A stretch of 64,000 nt of DNA, from NCBI GenBank assembly GCA_021613535.1, contig CP075496.1, positions 5,146,001 to 5,210,000 on the forward strand, given 5' to 3'. Position numbers and translations under genes: made by a program. Under the pieces are notes generated by a model. That model was not told the origin of the DNA and did no database searches. It worked only from the letters and a program-made list of their open reading frames with translations. The first letter of the stretch is position 1. Each line of letters begins with the position of its first letter. Origin of the DNA: Adineta vaga. Taxonomy: Eukaryota > Animalia > Rotifera. Shown here in pieces: positions 25,654 to 47,027 of this stretch.

Positions 25654-30074
<4,421 letters not shown>

Positions 30075-32146: not shown

Positions 32147-33298
32147 ATGCATTCTCGAGCTTATTTACTGATAAAACGTGATTTATATTTATTGGAAAAC
32201 AGTTCAGTCAATGGAATCGAAATTAAACCAATTAATGATAATAATTATTTTGATCTGACTTTAATTTTCCGTCCGATAAAACATTCCATGTGGGATGGTT
32301 GTCTCTTTCGAATCTATTGTTCATTTTATGATACATATAATATTCAACCACCTATTTTACAATTCGACCCGATGAATATTCCATACCATCCAAATGTTGA
32401 TCCAATAACAGGTCGAATTAGTTTGATCACAAGTGAAAAATGGAATCCAAATTTTACATTGAAAATGTTATTTGATGAATTAGTTAGTATATTTATTACA
32501 CCAAATGAAAACATAATGATCAATTCAGATGCTATGCGTATGTTGAAATATCGTTTAAATGACTATCGAAATTTAATCGATGAAACTATTGAAAAAAGTC
32601 GACAATTCATAGAAATACTAAATGAAGATAAAACAAGTATTAGTCAAACGCAAATTAGTTTACCAAAAGAAAAAGATTGTAATGAAATTAAAAGAATATC
32701 GTCATAAATTCTTGTTACTTCTTTTTTTTTCCTATAGTAATTGATCGAGCACGTTTACATACACCACAAGTAGGTGCACGACGACAACAACAACAACCAA
32801 ATTCATCAAAAAATCAACGAATCTCATTTGAAGATTATCTCATGACATGGAAAGGTATTGCAACATCAAAAGCTACATTAAAAGAAGAAAATCCGTTACT
32901 TAAACAATTAAGTTTACAACCAAAATTACACGCACAACATCTTGCTTTGAATGCTAATGAACTTGGTAAGATTTTTGTTGGAATACAATTCATCAAATTT
33001 ATCGATTCACTTTTTAGCACAACAACTTGATGATCGAGCGCTTCAATTTGAACGTCTCAAATATGGACAACTATCAAACCAAGAACATAGACGAAAAATT
33101 GTTCCTCACTCACAGATGAGTCTTCAAGGAAATGATCAACAACGTCATGTTGTAACTCAAGCAAACAGTAGTCTTGATCTTATAACAAACTCAGAAAGAC
33201 AAAATGATAATCAAATACAAAATGAAGAAGTTGATGAATTAATCGAATGGACACAGAATCTTCCAACTACTGCCGAAGAAATAAACGAAAATCATTGA
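32147..33298 (+). CDS. UBE2U-like ubiquitin-conjugating enzyme fold protein (catalytic Cys position reads Ser)
   Basis: UBC fold WDGCLFRI...YNIQPP...IPYHPNVDPITGRISL...WNP, with the downstream motif SFEDYLMTWKGIATSK. Three exons. Confidence 0.75.
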
Positions 33299-34393: not shown

Positions 34394-36768
34394 ATGTTTG
34401 TGTTATCAATATTATCTAAACGTTACTCGATAGGTTCTTCATCATTTCAATTTCAGAAATATCATTCTAGCTCAAAAAGAATGGACGCAATCAAAACAAT
34501 TATAACAACAATAGTCGGTGGTGATAATGATACGAATCCATCGACAGCATCAAATGAACAAATTCGTCATCAATTATGTAAAATTGATGAATTACAAAAT
34601 GGACAAATGAAAGAATTTGAAGTGAAAACTTCACTCGTCAATACAAGTGTTCTACTTATTAAACAAGATGATAAATTTCATGCATATTCAAGCAAATGTT
34701 GCCATTACAAATTACCATTAGCGAAAGGTTCAAACGAAATATTTATTTTTATTTCTATGTCTATGTTTTAAATTGAATAGGTGTTTTAATCAATAATCGT
34801 CTTCGTTGTTTTGCACATGGTGCATGTTTTCGTGTCGATACAGGTGATATTGAAGATCATCCTGGTCATGGAAATTTACCAAGTATCGTATAAACGATGA
34901 TTGATAGTATATATATAACTTAGAAATGTTTCTTTTATAACTTAGAATATGATGTGGAAATTGTTGATGGACAAGTTATTTTGATTGGAAATAAACAAGA
35001 TCTTGAGAAAGTGGAACGTTCAAAAATACCTGATAATCTTGAAGTTGACGCTAAACCAGTTGTAGCTATTGTGGGTGCTGGAGCAGGTAATTACCTCTAT
35101 AAAATACACGTACCGTTTGTTAACATTCAAGCACTCTGATTGCTTTAAATATGAAATTTGTCTCTAACAAGTTTTCTTATTACAGGTGGATTTACATGTG
35201 CTGATATGCTTCGTCAAAATGGTTTTCGTGGTCGTATATTACTATTTACACGTGAAGGAACTTTACCATACGATCGTGTAAGTTATTTAATTTACATTAT
35301 CTTTCGAAAGAAAACATATTCAATGACTATTTAGGTACAATTATCAAAACAACCATTGAAAAAAGCTCAAGATTTACTTCTTCGTGATCAAACATATTTT
35401 AAGAAAGCTAAAATTGATTTAATACTTGATACAGATGTAACAAATATTAATTGGAGTACGAAAAATTTAACTTATCATACACTTGGTAAACAGATGAAAT
35501 CTGAACCATATGATTATCTTGTATTAGCAACTGGTTTACGATCACGAAAATTACCTTCATCAATACGTGGAGGTGATCTTCGAAGCGTTTTCTATGTACG
35601 ATCTATGGCAGATGCAAATAATTTAGTTAGTAAGTTTTCAAATTGCACAATATATTTTTCGATCATTGTATTGATTAGATAAAGTAAAATCACCTGAAAC
35701 GAAAAATATTGTTATTATTGGTGATTCATTCATTGCATTGGAATTATGTGGATGGTTGACAACAGGTTTAGCAGGTCCGGATGGTAAACAAGACGAAGCA
35801 GACAAGAAAAATGTATCGGTCGTTATGCTTTTGAAAGCTCCTATGATTCGTAAATATTGATTTGATGCTAAATCAAAAAGAAAATTTATGATGCTTTTTT
35901 TAGGTATATTTGGTGAGAAAATTGCCTGTGCATTACAAAAAGTTCATGAAAAAAATGGAGCTAAATTTTATTCCGAAGCCAATGTTACTGAATTGACTGT
36001 GAGTTGAATTTGAATTGAATTGATTGCTTGATTAATCGTATTCGAAATATATAGGGTGAGAATGATATTGCTAAGTTTGTGCAATTAGCTACAGGTGAAT
36101 CAATTCCCTGTGATATGGTCATTGTTGCAATTGGCAGTGAAACATGTACAGAATTATATAAAGATTCACCTATCGAAATGAGTGAAGATCATTTTATTAA
36201 AGTCAATGATCGTTTAGAAACATCAGTCGAACATGTTCTAGCTGTTGGAGACATAAGTAAACATCCATTGAAAGTATTTAATTTAAATGAAGTCAATTGT
36301 CAACATTGGCAAATGGCATGTTCGACCGGTCATCAAGCTGGTAAGAAATTGATTTGAATAAATTAAATATCTGTATTTTATTTTCCTCTTTCCAATTAAG
36401 CGGATACAATTTTACATCATTATCTCGGTCAAACTAAAGGCGGTTCGCGTCCATTAAAAACTGATCTTTATACAGTTCCAATCTACTGGACAACACAAAA
36501 TAATAAAACTACTATTCGTTATGCTGGTTATACTCGTGATCCCGAAAATGTTGTTATACACGGTGATCTTGATGGAGAATTCAAATTCGTTGCTTATTAT
36601 ATTGTTGATGGTTATGTTCGAGCAGTTGCACAATCAAAATATGATCCATTATCAAGTGAAGTTGCTGAAGTATTTCATCATCGACGTAATATTCGTAAAG
36701 AAGATATTGAGAACGATATGTATGGTTATCGAAAATATTTGGATTTTAAAACCAAAAAACCAGAATAA
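34394..36768 (+). CDS. AIFM3: Apoptosis-inducing factor 3-like (Rieske 2Fe-2S + FAD/NAD oxidoreductase + reductase C-terminus)
   Basis: Rieske ligands CCHYKLPLAKG / RCFAHGACF, then IVGAGAGG, LPYDR, YDYLVLATG, VIIGDSFIALE, AVGDI, HWQMA, VPIYWT and IRYAGY. Confidence 0.92.
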
Positions 36769-36872
36769 ACATTGCTGTAGTCTTTTTTCTTTTATAAAAT
36801 TTAAAACTTAGCAATATAGTTTTTTTTTATCTATTTATGTCAGCTGCAATCATATTTAACCTTTCTTTTTAG

Positions 36873-39800
36873 ATGAATGATTCATCTGCTTTCTATGCCA
36901 TAATACAATGTCGAAAATGTGAACGACGTTTAAATAAACCTCTCGAATTAAAATGTGGACATCTGATCTGTCGGGATTGTCTGGAAAGTAAAGTGAATAT
37001 ATATATATATATAAATGTTCTATTTCACACTGTTTTTCTTTTCTGTTTAGCTATTCTTCGAAATCATCGTACTACTGCTGAATGTCCAACTTGTAAAGAA
37101 GTTCTAGGTGATTATCAGATTGAAAATTATACATATTTATCAACGAAACATAATGTATCACGTCTTATATTGTCATTTTCTGATGTTAATCTATGTGAAA
37201 CATGTAAACAATTTACCACAGTAGAAGAATGTCCACAATGTTCAAAAGATCAATGCGATTCATGTGCTGAAAAGCATGCAGAAACACATCGTCAACCAGA
37301 AAAACATTCAATAGAAAATGCTGTTCATTTTTCTGACGAAGAAAAACGTATTCTTGAATCGATAGAAAAATCTCTTACTAAAAACGAATATGAAGATTTT
37401 GTTCATACAGCAAAAGTTTATTTGAATTATGCAATATCAAAAAGCAATGGAATTAACTCATCTATAGGAATAGCTGAATCAAAGTTAATTACTGAAGAGA
37501 AATCTATTCTACCTATCAAACCAATACCGTATGATTGGTCAAAACATGAAAAATTCGATGCAGATGATATTCTCAATAGTAAACCAGAACGAGTGAAACA
37601 ATTGTTGCGTTTGAATTTTACTCCTCGACCATATCAAATACGAATGATTCGAGCTGGTTTGAAAAAACAAAATTCACTTGTTTGTCTACAAACTGGTGCT
37701 GGAAAAACATTTGTAAGTAGTTTTATTTTCGTTCAATCGTGTCTCAAGTTAATCATATGATGTAAAACAACTCTCATTATTTACCTGTCCATCCGTTAAC
37801 TTCATATACTTATGATTATTCTTTCGCGCTGATTCTAATTGATAGTATCTTTGTTAGGTTGCTGGTATGGTTGCTAAATTTTTCCATATACTTTCATTAC
37901 AAAACATCAGTAACTCATCTAGAACGTCCTCGAATTCAGGAAGAAGATTCAAAGCTGTTTTTCTTGTACCAATTAAAGCCTTAGTTGATCAACAATACAG
38001 CGCATTTCAAAAAGTGTTTATCGATGAACCTGATTCAATCCTAAAGACCATCGAAAATCAAGTTGGAGAACGGTAAAGAATAATATTGACCTTAAACATA
38101 TTCAAAAATTGCTTTTTCCATATATTTATTCGTATTTAGATTCGAAAGTTTTTATCAAAATTTTGATATTTTCTTCTTTACCGTCCAAAAATTTGCAAAT
38201 TTTGTTGAGGCAAAACATGCCGATTTAGCAAAATTTGATTTAATTATGATAGATGGTAAGGTTCAATAGATAGATAAAACAATCTTTCGAAATTTTCTGA
38301 CTATTTCACTTAAGAATGTCATCATTGTTATGATAATCATCCTGTCAATTCTATGATGCGTCAATATCATCGATTGAAATCATCTGGTTATACTGTACCA
38401 CAAATAATTGCTTTGTAATGAAATAATTGATTTATTTTAATTCATACAATCGATTTCATTTGTTGTTTATAGAACAGCAAGTGTTGGCACGAATAAAAAG
38501 AATGCATTCGATCATCTTGTTCATCTCTGTGCTAATCTTGATTGTTTTGATATCTGTGCTATTAAGAAAGGTGTCGAACAAGAAGAACTTCAAAATTCAA
38601 CAAATACACCATTAGCTGATACAATTATCACAGTGCCAAAAGAAGAGAATGATCCAATTGTTCGATTACTCCAAGATGATGTTATGAAAAGCATTGCGCA
38701 TCGTCTTGCTCTAGATATATCAGCGATGACTAATGAAAAATTAGAAAATTTCCTTGTTATAGCATATACGAATGCTTGTAAAACGAATGATCGTGATGGT
38801 ATTATTGGTTGCGACTATCTACGAAAATTAAATGTATGATATGAATAAGAATATTTTTAATATTTTATTGATTGATTTGATTACATATTTATTTAGCGTT
38901 TTCTTCTCTTCTACAATGATTTACCACTTGAGCAATGTATGGAAAGACTAGAAGAAGTTTTACAAGATTGTTCACCGAGTAATCCAACAGCATTTCAAGC
39001 TTTTTGTCAGAAAAAATTAAACGAACTTCATGCTCATGTTGCAAAACAGATATCACTTAATGCTCCACCTAAGCTTAAATTACAAAAACTAGTTGAAGTA
39101 CTTATTAGTTTGCATGCTCCTAATTGTCGAGGTAAGATTATGAATGAATCTTTCTCAATTTCTTTTTTTTAACTAATTGAGAAGATTCAAATGAAATGTG
39201 ATATTTATTGATTAAACAATATGAGTATCTTTAAGGTTTGGTCCTGGTTCGTACTAAATTTCATACTGTGGCCTTAGAAAAATTTCTCAATGAACATCCG
39301 CAAATGCGCAAACGTCAAATATCTGTGGGACATCTGACTGGACAAGGTTCAGCAGACGATCTTTGTTTACCAGGTACTCAACAAGCAACAGTTTTGAATG
39401 AATTTCGAAAAGGTACTAAAAGTTTACTCGTTGCTACTGGTAAGTTAATAAAAATCTATTGATGAAGAGCTTGATATATATATATATATATATATATAAA
39501 TATTTGTGTAGATGTTGCTCAAGAAGGATTGGATGTAGCAGAATGTTCATATGTTGTTCGATATGAATTTGTATCGAATGAAATTGGTACAGTTCAAAGT
39601 CGAGGACGAGCTCGAGCTGCTCAAAGTAAATGTTTCCTATTGACAGAAGCACGTAAGCGTTTTGATGTGATAGGTTTTAATAATTATGAATCAAAATTTT
39701 TTGTTCTATAAAAGAATCACTGAATAGTCAACGTGAACGCGATAATCGTCAACGAGAAGATGAAATGAAAGCCGCTATCGATGAATGGTATAAACGAGGA

Positions 39801-40350
39801 ATTTTAGAATTTCGAATACTCGTGGAGAAAAAACAAGTACAATCTAAATATGCATTTGTTTTCATTATATTTTTGTTCATATTTTTAGACAGAAATCATC
39901 GAGGAATTATGCAAGAATGATACTCAATCGCCAATAACACCAGATAATAAATCACAAAATAATCAAGCAACTGCAAGAGAAATTCGTTGTCGTTTTTGTG
40001 ATAAATATCTATGTAATGGTTCAAGTTTAAGATATCAAGGCACTACTGTTATTTGTAAAGATCCAGCATTTGAACAACTAGTGAACCTACCAAAATCTCC
40101 TGGAGGTAATTGTGTTTTTATGGTTCAAAAGTCTTGCTTTTGTTTTTAAACTTCAACTTGAACTTTAGCGAAATTTGTCTGTCCAAATCCAACATGTCAA
40201 CGAGAACTTGGTGGCGTTATTTTATTATCACGTAATGATCCGGCATATGCATTACAAATAACTGCATTGAAATTTATCGCTAATCAATCAAAAGAACCGT
40301 GTCTGTACAAAAAATGGAGTCAATATCAAGGTTATATAAAACCCTTATAG
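36873..40350 (+). CDS. RIG-I-like (RLR/DRH) DExD/H RNA helicase with N-terminal C3HC4 RING and B-box-like zinc finger and a C-terminal RIG-I CTD
   Basis: Helicase motifs PRPYQ, QTGAGKT, FLVPIKALVDQQ, TVQKF, IDECHH, LTASVG...LCANLD, LVATDVAQEGLDV and QSRGRARA. The CTD reads CRFC...CPNPTCQRELG...YKKW. The N-terminal zinc fingers lie in the same ORF as Walker A. Confidence 0.9.
39474..39497. repeat. (TA)n microsatellite in a helicase intron. Similar short tracts occur at ~23982-24001 (TA), ~47173-47192 (TA), ~22924-22940 (GT) and ~31384-31401 (GA)
   Basis: Read directly from the sequence. Confidence 0.8.
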
Positions 40351-41755: not shown

Positions 41756-44700
41756 ATGATGTGGTCTTCACAGGGAAATACGGATTACAATTCAAATGGT
41801 AATTTGTTTGTTTAAATTTTGGCAAATTTTTATCTATGAATTCTTTTTTTTCCATTTTTTAGAGCGTTCAGCGCATTCAGTTTCACAACCAATTAATATG
41901 CCAAATCGACCATTGGATTTGACCGCAGGTTACGTTGACACACACAGTGCGGTTTTTTCACCCAAGTCAACAGATCCAACTAATCTCGGTGTTAATATGT
42001 GTATGAATATATTAGAAGGTGATAATTCACCACGCGTGAAAGATAATACAATTAAAGATGTTTCACAACGTTTACAAAATATGAAAATTTATGTAAGTAA
42101 AATAAACATTTCTAATACATTTAGTTCACTTTCGCTTATATGTGTGACCATTGATTCGCATTACTAGTCTATGATAGGATAATAGATTACCCCCATGTTG
42201 TATAGTTAATATTCAGTTGATTATTGATAACAGATCTGATCTTCAGTAGTGAGCAATCTGATTTGAATGATAAGAATAATCTTGATGAATTTCATAATAT
42301 TCATTCCTCCATTTTATTCTATTCTAGACTGACAGTGATAATGATAAAAAAGCACATGATAATCCAAATGAATTTCATGTTGATGATGGTAAATCCGATG
42401 AAACAGTAGGTGATAATGTATTACCAAATACAAGTCGTAAACAATCACCACGCGCATCGCCTGGTCATATTCATAATGATTTACCAAATGGTAGTACTAA
42501 TGAAAATCTTTCATCCAATGATCCAATGGGTCCTCACAATGATATTAATGATAGTGGTTTACCATCAGTACATTCAGTAATGAATGGTATGCCAACAGCA
42601 TCCGTACCGATACCATTTCAACGAATGCAACCAAATGATCATCAACAACAAATGTTAATTTATCAACAACAGCAACAACAAGCGTAAATAACAATTAAAA
42701 TGACGAAATATAGTTTTTTTAAAATAACGTTGTTCATCCATTTTTAGTTATCAAGCTCAACAATATCAAATGCTTCAACAGCAAGTAGCGCATTATGAAA
42801 TGGATCCGCGTACTACAAACTTTCAACCATTCGATTATACATTAATTCAACCACAATCGTTAGTTTTTTTAAATTTTCTTTTCATTCAAACACGAACATT
42901 TTTCTTCTTTCAAGATATGAAAGTCAATCAATTATTTCCGCTTTTAATCCACAAGCATCAGGCACAGCACAACAAGATCCTCAGCTAGCTAATCTTGCTC
43001 AAGGTCCATTAATGCCTTGGTTACAAAGCACTGTTGCTGCACAACAACAATCCGCTAATCAACAAACACCATATGGTTCATCATCCAATCAATATATACT
43101 AAATAATTCTCAAGATAATTATTTACAAACATTAGCAAATTTTCATCAAACACCAGGTACGCATCCATCGTTTCAACCTCAATATTGGTCAGCAGTTCCA
43201 ACTACTCTCATGTTTTCCGCTCCACCATCGCAAACAATGCTAGCACAACAACAATCATTAAATAATGAACAACAATCACCACAATCGAAAACTAACAATA
43301 ACAATAATAATCGTCCATTGACACCTTCAAATTCCAATGATTTATTGAGTACATCACAACCCAATCAACAACAATTTATGAATATGCCTCGTACTGCGCA
43401 AACACCACGTATGACAAATGAAAGTTGATTTTTGTTAGAACGATTCTAATCCACTTCTATTTTAGTTAATTTTCCATACTATGCAGCTGCTTCACCAACC
43501 TTCCTTGATCCAGCTTTAATGATGCAAACATCCAGAGCACCTAATGGTTCACCGAACATTCGCATGTATCAACAACAAGTACCAATTCCAAGTATTTTAT
43601 TCTGAAATTCAATCTTTTTATTCACATCGTATATATCTTATTTTAGTCAATACAAATAATCAAGGTGGTCTTTATGGCAGTCCAGTAGCAAGTTCACTTT
43701 CAAGTTCATTCAATGGTAAGTTAAAATCGATTGATTAGCCAGAGATCACAAGGCACAAATATTCTAGAAGCTTTGTTTCAGTTGTATCAAAATAATCTTT
43801 CTATATAAAACTACACTAACTAATCAAAGAAAAGATAGATATTTTGTCTGTGAATTCGAAATGAATAAGAATTTTCATTCTTTACTATGGTTGTCTGATT
43901 TGATTTGACATGGTTGTCTGTTATTTGTCATCATTTTGTTTTGTTCTTTTTACAAAAAATTCGAGACATTTCATTTAGTTATTTTTGCAATTCAGAAAAG
44001 ATGACTAAACCAATGGTAACATGACGTTGCCCGAGATTCGATCTTCAAAATTCTCATTGATTACTAATTATTAGAGAATTGTTTGTTTTATACTTAGCAG
44101 TTCCTTTTCAACTAAAGTCTTTCTTCTTCATAGATGCATATACTGTTCCAAATCCACGACGTGACGGTTCCATAGTTGATTTCTCTCGTTTTCCAGGTGA
44201 TCCTCGTCTACCAAAACAAGGTCAACAACAGCAACAACAACAACAACAAACGCCGTTATTTCACGGTCAAATCAGTGGTCTACCACCCTCACCGGCTTAT
44301 AACAATTTAATACCATCAATGACTCCACCACCAACTTCTAACACTGCAACATTTGATGGTATGTTCAATACTCGATTTTTTCCTCCAAATGGTTCATCAA
44401 CTGGTGGATCTCAACAACAAATTCTCAATGGTAATGATATGTATGTTGGCCGTCGTAGTGTGGGTAGCATCAGTGGAACAATGCCAAGTTTTTATCCTCC
44501 AAATGTATTTGGTGGTAATGGAAACTGCCAATAACTTACCCGGAAATGGCAATGCTCGTGATGCAAATATTAATCGAAGTAAATTATTGGACGATTTTCG
44601 TAATAGTCGAATGCCAAATTTACAATTACGTGATGTTGTTGGTCATTTTACGGAATTTTCAATGGATCAACATGGTTCAAGATTTATTCAACAAAAACTT

Positions 44701-47027
44701 GAACGTGCAACTAATAGTGAAAAAGATATGGTCTTCAAAGAAATTCTTCCTAATTCATCTCAATTAATGACCGATGTCTTCGGAAATTATGTTATTCAAG
44801 TAAGAAATCACAAACGAATAATCGTTCTTTTTCTTAAAAACATTCTATATTTTAGAAATTTTTCGAATTTGGTACAGTTGAACATAAAGGACATTTGGCT
44901 CATCGCATTCGTGGAAATGTTCTAACACTTGCATTGCAAATGTATGGCTGTCGTGTTATTCAAAAAGCTGTCGAAACTTTACCAGGCGACTTTCAATTGC
45001 AAATAGCAAGAGAATTAGAAGGCAATGTAGTGAAATGTATTGAAGATCAAAATGGTAATCATGTTATCCAAAAATGTATTGAATGTTGTTCAAGTGAAAG
45101 TATTGAATTTATTATACGAGATGTAACCAGACAAGTTTTCTCACTTTCATCGCATCCATATGGTTGTCGAGTCATTCAGCGTATATTAGAAAATTGTAAA
45201 GATTTTCAAACACGACCAATACTTGACATCTTATATAATGAATTGGACAATCTTGTGCAAGATCAATATGGTAAGAAATATCTAGGAATGAAAAGATTCA
45301 ATTTTTGTTTTTTGTTTCGTGTTTTAGGAAATTATGTCATTCAACATGTATTAGAGCATGGCAAAGTCGAAGATCGAACTCGTATAATTAATGCTATAAC
45401 CGGTCGTGTATTACAGTTATCACAACATAAATTTGCCAGGTAAGAAAAAAATCTCGCGTTAAAGTTAATCGAATACACATGTCATTTGTTTGTTTCTTTG
45501 TTTTAGTAATGTTGTAGAAAAATGTGTTACGTATGCAACAAGGGATGAAAGACGACAGCTTATTGATGAAGTTGTCACATCTGGTGATGGGTAAAGTTGA
45601 CTGCTTAAAGATTTACATGAGAATTAGATAATATTGTTGATTTCTTCTTTCTAGACCTAATTGTGCTTTATTAACAATGATGAAAGATCAGTTTGCTAAT
45701 TATGTTGTTCAAAAGGTAAGTTATTTATTTAACATTTTTCCATACGATAAACTTATACATTGAAAATCAATGAAAAAAGTTAAGAAGTAATCTATTCCTA
45801 AAAAATTCATCGTTGTGCTTTTACGATGATTAAGAACTATTCAATGACTAATATGTAAAAGAAAAGAAAAGTAACTTGAAATCTAGCTCCTTCATACTGA
45901 CATATATGATTAATAGAGCTGACAATATGCACGATTTGCATAAATTGACTATGTTGAATTAATCATTATTTTAATAAATTATGCTCATAACAGATTTGAA
46001 ATTGTCAATTGTTCTAAGAACATGAAATAATAACTGTTGAGCTGTTCAAGATTATTTTAATCCGATTTCAACATTTCAATCATTCTCAACGATGAATACA
46101 AGTACTTTTTGAATATTTCTTACTGACATTCTTTATCCTTTCCATTTTCTACAGCACGCTTTTAGTTTTCTCAAACCGCCTTCTCTCCTCTTCATCAACA
46201 TAGCTTGTGATTCAATCACATACGCACGTCGAGAAAAGAAAATACTAACTGGATAAAATTAGATCGATACTCTTTGAACTACACAAATAATTGTTGATTG
46301 AATATAGAACTCGCTTTTTTTCTCTTCTCCATTCGAAAGAAAAGAAACGATGCTTTTCTACTGTCTAACCGTAGACTATTGTATAGTTTCATTGATATAG
46401 AAAGTATTCTAATTCAAAGATTTGCAATCGCTTACGTTTTTAACGTTAATTATTACAAAACTATTCATATCATCAAAGATATAATGTTTATGGACGGACA
46501 TTTGATTCAGTGTTTCAGAATAATAGACGATCGTCGTCTTTTTTCATATCAAAATACATTAGCAAACATTGACATCAAAGATTCTTTGTTTCGGAATGAG
46601 CTTTCTTAACTTCCTACGCATGCCCATCATTAAATATTCTCTCATGAATCTTTCCACTTACAATAGAAGCTAGTTCTATTATCTTTGATATATTTATATT
46701 CATTCTCAAAAGAATTCTATTGAAAATTGTCTTTTTTCCTGATCTAGTCTTTTTTTCTTAATTAATAATCCAAAACAAGAAGATTTTTTTTATTTATATT
46801 TAATTTGTTTTTCTTCTTCTTCTTGTTCAAATCAGATGATTGATGTTGCTGAACCTCCTCAACGAAAAATTCTCTTACAAAAAGTTCGACCACATATTCA
46901 ATCACTTCGAAAATTCACCTATGGAAAACATATTATTACTAAACTTGAAAAATATCTTAGTAAAAGTACAGACATGGCCTCAATGTCATCATCAAATTCG
47001 AACGGTTTATCACATTATGACAATTAA
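41756..47027 (+). CDS. pum: Pumilio (PUF) RNA-binding protein with 8 canonical repeats; one apparent frameshift near 44522
   Basis: [20 protein letters not shown], then repeats with SRFIQ, NYVIQ, CRVIQ, NHVIQ, CRVIQ, NYVIQ, SNVVE and NYVVQ, ending [16 protein letters not shown]. The N-terminus is Q/N-rich. Confidence 0.95.

Follow-up and report, generated by a model that had tools for sequence, protein, structure and literature searches.

How does a receptor of the RIG-I-like family (RLR) signal when its N-terminus carries a RING and a B-box in the place of the tandem CARDs of RIG-I and MDA5? The question is raised by a single gene in a window of 64,000 nucleotides (nt) from the bdelloid rotifer Adineta vaga (GenBank assembly GCA_021613535.1, contig CP075496.1, positions 5,146,001 to 5,210,000 of the forward strand), which an earlier note had read as an RLR helicase fused to its own TRIM-type RING/B-box and acting as a self-contained ubiquitin ligase activated by double-stranded RNA (dsRNA). 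Vertebrate RLRs depend on RING ligases that act in trans, and clustering is what turns a TRIM RING on. Our analysis confirmed that the gene is expressed and conserved in bdelloids and joins an RLR core to a RING/B-box, and the best explanation of its product (hereafter RING-RLR) is a bdelloid-specific RLR that acquired its signalling head, a RING-B-box, from a TRIM-like gene. The gene and its parts, in window coordinates, are as follows.

36873..40350, plus strand: RING-B-box-RLR gene, 12 coding exons, 2670 nt, 889 amino acids (aa) and a stop
36873-36987, 37051-37712, 37858-38072, 38140-38255, 38315-38414, 38473-38833, plus strand: exons 1-6
38897-39131, 39236-39439, 39512-39652, 39715-39836, 39889-40105, 40169-40350, plus strand: exons 7-12
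36909..37094, plus strand: C3HC4 RING (aa 13-53), split by intron 1 and flanked by helices aa 4-10 and 73-80
36988..37050, plus strand: intron 1, 63 nt, in frame, stop-free, inside the RING; spliced in the NCBI model
37194..37277, plus strand: single B-box-type zinc finger (aa 87-114), C-x2-C-x8-C-x2-C-x4-C-x2-C-x3-H
37332..37451, plus strand: two-helix hairpin (aa 133-172), conserved, too short for a TRIM coiled coil
37617..37709, plus strand: Q motif of Hel1 plus Walker A (aa 228-258); exon 2, which also encodes the B-box
38252..38322, plus strand: Walker B DECH (aa 369-372), split by intron 4
39595..39615, plus strand: motif VI QSRGRAR (aa 698-704), followed by a long pincer helix (aa 719-770)
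39967..40350, plus strand: RIG-I-type zinc C-terminal domain (CTD; aa 786-889), split by intron 11, with four zinc Cys and KKW kept

The spliced product of the 12 exons was 100% identical to the NCBI A. vaga hypothetical protein I4U23_018699 (889 aa), in which a C3HC4 RING, one B-box-type finger, a short helix pair, a RIG-I-like helicase and a zinc CTD follow one another. Sequence inspection placed the RING, the B-box-like finger, the linker, the helicase motifs, the zinc CTD and its KKW where the earlier note had put them. Its uninterrupted reading frame was borne out in part, as the open reading frame 36873-37760 is real but holds the 63-nt in-frame intron 36988-37050; its claim that the fusion does not depend on splice guesses stood, because exon 2 (662 nt) alone joins the last Cys pair of the RING to the B-box, the Q motif and Walker A. 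In the A. vaga assembly (100.8 Mb, 6 contigs, GC ~30%), introns measure ~60 nt, and 9 of the 11 introns of this gene were seen as GT..AG joints in contigs from four RNA-like runs of three studies; these runs were presumed to be RNA by guess, and the spliced joints argue for it. Introns 1 and 8 showed no joint among the RNA contig rows shown, intron 8 lying at a skipped repeat. The position and phase of intron 1 are kept in the orthologues, four of which have 48-55 nt there, with a TGA in one and the intron out of frame in two. A search of the haploid assembly found no second copy or ohnologue, so that the gene is counted at one copy at least. Contigs of three runs depart from the genomic sequence at 37456 and 40552 with identical loose letters, possibly short matches to other transcripts.

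The same data bear on whether the fusion might be an artefact of two adjoining genes, of read-through or of a transcript starting after the RING. The absence of an intron 1 joint among the rows shown speaks for such a reading, as does the lack of any single RNA record from RING to CTD, where contigs alone were found; both weigh against the fusion as we read it. Yet a single exon encodes both the B-box and Walker A, the same fusion appears over the full length of seven independent NCBI gene models, the intron positions and the ATG context are conserved, and RNA contigs cover exon 1, one of them beginning exactly at the intron 1 acceptor (37051). An artefact is thereby largely refuted, and we give it hardly any credence.

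The helicase and CTD identify the protein. ResIII, DEAD and Helicase_C all exceeded their Pfam cut-offs on the full protein, and RIG-I_C-RD (PF11648) reached 26.9 and 33 bits (cut-off 25.6) on the isolated C-terminus, residues 785-889; together with zf-C3HC4, these are the families that had been expected, and of the expected set the B-box stayed below its cut-off. Helicase motifs Q and I-VI are all intact, with GAGKT at 254-258, DECH at 369-372, TAS at 404, LCANLD at 421 and QSRGRAR at 698, and the CTD keeps its zinc Cys at 791, 794, 834 and 839 and KKW at 877. PF18119 gave no match on the protein; Hel2i and the pincer are present as model helices at 464-576 and 719-770. RIG-I, MDA5 and LGP2 share this Hel1-Hel2i-Hel2-pincer-CTD arrangement with all its motifs, and were the best PDB matches in both sequence and fold. 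RLRs scored E-values of 1e-52 to 1e-42 (1e-52 to 1e-45 for these three), against 1e-25 and weaker for Dicer and 1e-11 for FANCM, and the AlphaFold model (mean predicted local distance difference test, pLDDT, 79) superposed on MDA5, RIG-I, LGP2 and DRH-1 over ~700 columns with template modelling scores, taken by target, of 0.75-0.82 (0.76-0.82 for MDA5, RIG-I and LGP2). In a quick IQ-TREE analysis of the helicase core, which gives SH-aLRT support only and left out MDA5, LGP2 and DRH rows, the RING-RLRs formed one branch (100) that joined bdelloid RLRs bearing death effector domains (DEDs) and a Brachionus RLR (99) inside the RLRs (97), apart from Dicer and Hef/FANCM. No RNase III, PAZ or nuclease/Hef domain was found in the protein, and three Dicers and one FANCM-like protein are encoded by separate genes of the genome. 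Judged by sequence, RING-RLR is thus a true RLR, and the tree, the PDB E-values and the fold uphold the grouping of its helicase with RLRs rather than FANCM or Dicer.

Neither Pfam nor the N-terminal model yielded a CARD in the protein, whose N-terminus is the RING-B-box, so that the RLR without CARDs, carrying its own RING/B-box beside intact ATPase motifs and CTD, was found as proposed. This loss is not special to RING-RLR, as the other RLRs of the genome use DEDs: 33 DED matches were counted and no CARD_2 match, a weak negative. Genome searches with PF11648 and PF16739 returned nothing, and such blanks mean little because PF11648 missed even the intron-split CTD of this gene. One DED-RLR locus is a tandem (contig C5, 14943560-14950750), with two DED exons, a degenerate RLR (Walker A GGKKT, Walker B DECD, motif VI QARIRAR) and then an intact DED-RLR; the first DED is either its own gene or part of a protein with two DEDs. 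The CTD of RING-RLR differs from that of RIG-I in missing ~12 residues of the basic loop, a deletion that the Brachionus RLR shares. At the sites matching RIG-I His830 and Lys888, RING-RLR has neither His nor Lys. The absence of these features makes 5'-triphosphate sensing improbable, and RING-RLR, as far as its residues tell, is unlikely to be a 5'-triphosphate sensor.

The head consists of a RING that spans C13 to C53 (Pfam zf-C3HC4, 25.1 bits; cut-off 21) and a finger for which no Pfam match reached the cut-off. A model of residues 1-175 was confident over 11-116 (pLDDT ~90), and the best structural matches to its RING were dimeric RINGs, those of TRIM69, RING1B, TRIM2, TRIM25 and TRIM21, with Z of 10.1-10.7; both flanking helices, as found in dimeric TRIM/BRCA1-type RINGs, were modelled at high confidence. 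All 8 RING and 7 B-box ligands are invariant in the seven orthologues. The ligand spacing of the finger equals that of a rotifer RING-B-box-coiled-coil protein, and the two group profiles align over 115 columns (hhalign probability 98.8). Language-model neighbours of residues 80-175 were B-box proteins (0.89), which we treat as a lead only; the B-box assignment is hence suggested by the spacing, by homology to rotifer RING-B-box proteins and by model-based leads. Rotifer RING-B-box-coiled-coil proteins, such as A. ricciae CAF0998971.1, share the RING and the single B-box with RING-RLR; in contrast to it, they run on into a long helical region and have no helicase. By their sequences, they are the likely donor family of the head, and the genome holds many RING-B-box and B-box-coiled-coil genes (five such loci were recorded).

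After the B-box, RING-RLR has only two helices, 134-144 (11 residues) and 149-172 (24 residues), and then a poorly conserved linker of low model confidence. Pfam, PDB and the A. vaga genome offered no detectable relative of the helix pair 133-172, nor did these three sources back the idea that it makes up one half of a bundle of the PAH/harmonin kind. The description of the head as TRIM-type accordingly fits the RING-B-box and fails at the missing coiled coil: because the modelled chain has no coiled coil, RING-RLR is not a TRIM protein.

Full-length orthologues of 882-893 aa, 49-69% identical to the A. vaga protein, were found in A. steineri, in Didymodactylos carnosus and in four species of Rotaria. 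Each of the three bdelloid genera seen (Adineta, Rotaria and Didymodactylos) thus has the fusion, and five further genomic loci from environmental assemblies bear the same RING-B-box head. A search with the first open reading frame against 50% representatives gave fragments only, and the full-length orthologues were reached through a chain of natural database proteins; the metagenome search for related loci returned at least one true orthologue fragment. Among 12 non-bdelloid RLRs and other helicases examined, a small sample, none had the RING pattern. The Brachionus plicatilis RLR (L012:8001-10013) is intronless, 670 aa long and devoid of an N-terminal head, the frame before its ATG being closed. 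From these sequences the fusion looks bdelloid-specific, gained in the bdelloid stem or lost in monogononts, with thin sampling outside bdelloids.

What such a head may do is best approached through the ligases that serve vertebrate RLRs. RIPLET and TRIM65 rely on avidity to recognise filaments of RLRs (bioRxiv 2020.08.26.268649). Clustering dimerises and activates the TRIM21 RING, its B-box being inhibitory, and a RING-nanobody fusion without coiled coil is functional (bioRxiv 2020.07.28.225359). In RIPLET, TRIM65, TRIM25 and TRIM21 (the last also in Trim-Away), a RING with dimer helices is clustered on a polymeric target, as we propose for RING-RLR; they differ from it in acting in trans and in having a coiled coil and PRY-SPRY, while RING-RLR would act in cis without either. 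In the scheme we favour, the helicase and CTD, as their motifs suggest, would clasp dsRNA and hydrolyse ATP; since the basic loop of RIG-I is missing from the CTD, they would probably show no 5'-triphosphate selectivity. The RING, which has no coiled coil that could dimerise it beforehand, would stay monomeric and off until several molecules had loaded side by side on long dsRNA; the clustered RINGs would then dimerise across neighbours by way of a flexible linker of ~25 residues and activate the E2-ubiquitin conjugate. Ubiquitin might be placed on RING-RLR itself, on co-bound proteins (for example viral ones, or DED-RLRs that share the RNA) or into signalling chains, and the helicase-CTD would replace the coiled coil and PRY-SPRY of RIPLET, TRIM65 and TRIM21 as the part that reads the target and clusters. 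Such clustering is plausible by analogy, because the RING keeps both dimer helices and the TRIM21 RING is activated in this way. That clustering on dsRNA dimerises the RING and so switches on ubiquitination we rate at even chances. The wider proposal, a one-chain dsRNA-switched ligase that polymerises on foreign dsRNA as an RNA-directed, Trim-Away-like effector independent of CARDs and MAVS, and thus reinvents the vertebrate RLR-TRIM partnership as a gene fusion, we put at slightly under even.

Several points weigh against this ligase. The formation of filaments is assumed in the scheme. The sites matching BRCA1 Ile26 and Leu28, which we take to be E2 contacts that are usually hydrophobic, are Lys (Lys15) and Glu (Glu17), each in 6 of the 7 orthologues (Adineta and Rotaria), and the linchpin, Lys in A. 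vaga, is not conserved (K/T/N/N/N/S/Q across the seven). A cationic linchpin is the rule for RING E3s (PMC12326332), and TRIM6 and TRIM22, with a Gln linchpin, are inactive, although TRIM32 with Ser is active (PMC11992055). Two E2-contact positions and the linchpin being non-canonical, the E3 activity suggested by the RING sequence is uncertain, and ligase competence is the main risk to the idea of a dsRNA-activated ligase. On the other side, the mean pairwise identity of the RING across orthologues (73%) is comparable to that of the helicase (75-78% in Hel1/Hel2) and unlike that of the linkers (34-39%), which counts for a ligase; the B-box and CTD stand at 63% and 65%. TRIM RINGs need their flanking helices to dimerise and act (PMC11992055). 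The RING fold and the Lys linchpin that A. vaga keeps also count for a ligase, as does the activity of TRIM32 with Ser at that site.

The same residues may be read as those of a pseudoligase or scaffold, in which the RING-B-box, a protein-binding head displayed by dsRNA clustering, would not catalyse by itself but attract an adaptor or a RING partner that is active, in a heterodimer like those of BARD1 and BMI1. Besides the non-canonical contacts and linchpin, the invariant residues outside the zinc ligands and after the RING (R19, E25, E38, N43, H44, Y60, I62, E63, Y65 and H72) would fit a partner surface, TRIM pseudoligases exist (PMC11992055), and the many RING-B-box proteins of the genome supply possible partners. 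Against it, position 15 is canonically hydrophobic in four more distant orthologous loci (I, V, F and I), Pro51 and a hydrophobic position 40 are mostly retained, and non-Arg linchpins can be active. We consider a pseudoligase unlikely, if a serious competitor to the dsRNA-switched ligase.

The surroundings of the gene may bear on how it is expressed, and comprise the following features.

27251-30074, minus strand: alpha-actinin-like gene, upstream
32147-33298: UQ_con (UBC-fold) gene whose C-terminal extension is long; synteny kept in two other loci
34394-36768: Rieske + Pyr_redox gene, upstream, spliced and expressed, with synteny in five loci; presumably AIFM3-like
36861..36872, plus strand: pyrimidine tract and AG directly before the ATG, probable trans-splice acceptor
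41796-45443: Pumilio-like gene, downstream, syntenic

The tract and AG directly precede the ATG in all six loci, and the stop of the upstream gene lies 104-149 nt before the RING-RLR ATG in the five loci that reach it (104 nt in A. vaga). The upstream messenger RNA is polyadenylated at 36873 in one run, a contig of which starts at 36871 with one unmatched letter. The Rieske/Pyr_redox gene is shared by 4 of the 5 further loci and the Pumilio-like gene by 3. The UBC-like gene was considered as a Ubc13-type partner and, by eye, is not one. The junction 36769-36872 fits a candidate trans-spliced operon junction with RING-RLR as the downstream gene, a layout not reported for rotifers according to PMC7986045. 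If it is an operon, the RING-RLR gene may have no promoter of its own, and an absence of induction by poly(I:C) would therefore be compatible with the ligase model.

An operon-like site behind a housekeeping gene would also suggest constitutive expression, as might suit an RNA-silencing cofactor like nematode DRH-1/DRH-3 that helps Dicer on viral or transposon dsRNA and uses the RING-B-box for complex assembly or turnover, not signalling. The three Dicer genes, the weak CARD_2 negative and the RLR-like scores of DRH-1 fit this reading; no sequence link to the DRH N-terminal domain was seen, with the DRH proteins outside the tree, and we hold it improbable, below the pseudoligase. The DED-RLRs of the same genomes bring up a further alternative, an LGP2-like brake or clean-up factor, in which an active E3 would bind dsRNA so as to clear away or damp down filaments of DED-RLRs, or complexes with self dsRNA, instead of setting off defence. 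RING-RLR has no death-fold head of its own, and its closest non-bdelloid match, the Brachionus RLR, is headless; this reading differs from the dsRNA-switched ligase only in its output, and we regard it as quite improbable.

Grafted heads are known among invertebrate RLRs: those of lophotrochozoans include Death, CARD, DED, IG, SAM and CASc (Yao et al. 2022, PMC8998645). Like the bdelloid DED-RLRs and RING-RLR, they exchange the N-terminal effector and keep the RLR core. The main text of PMC8998645 makes no mention of RING, TRIM, rotifer, Adineta or Brachionus, and the literature searched, which covered few subscription papers, contained no study of a RING-B-box RLR or of bdelloid RLRs. ZNFX1 joins an RNA helicase and an E3 module in one chain, activated by RNA and dimerisation (PMC13710534; bioRxiv 2025.09.05.674436), and is a precedent for an RNA-activated helicase-E3 that resembles the proposed RING-RLR in function; it differs in its unrelated SF1/UPF1-type single-stranded RNA helicase core, its different RING (C-terminal RZ and Z-RING) and the opposite order of its parts. 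N-terminal grafting on invertebrate RLRs and helicase-E3 fusions are thus both known, and the RING-B-box head is undescribed in the literature searched.

As a single protein of 889 aa whose fusion is kept in all three bdelloid genera seen, RING-RLR offers a direct test bed for dsRNA-dependent RING activation. Should its RING prove dead, it would still be a new RLR architecture, of less interest. If the proposal is true, an RLR would have a ubiquitin enzyme for its head where others have an adaptor of the death-fold type, RNA-activated E3s would be reached by a second route next to that of ZNFX1, and RING-RLR would be an entry to the antiviral or anti-transposon defence of bdelloids.

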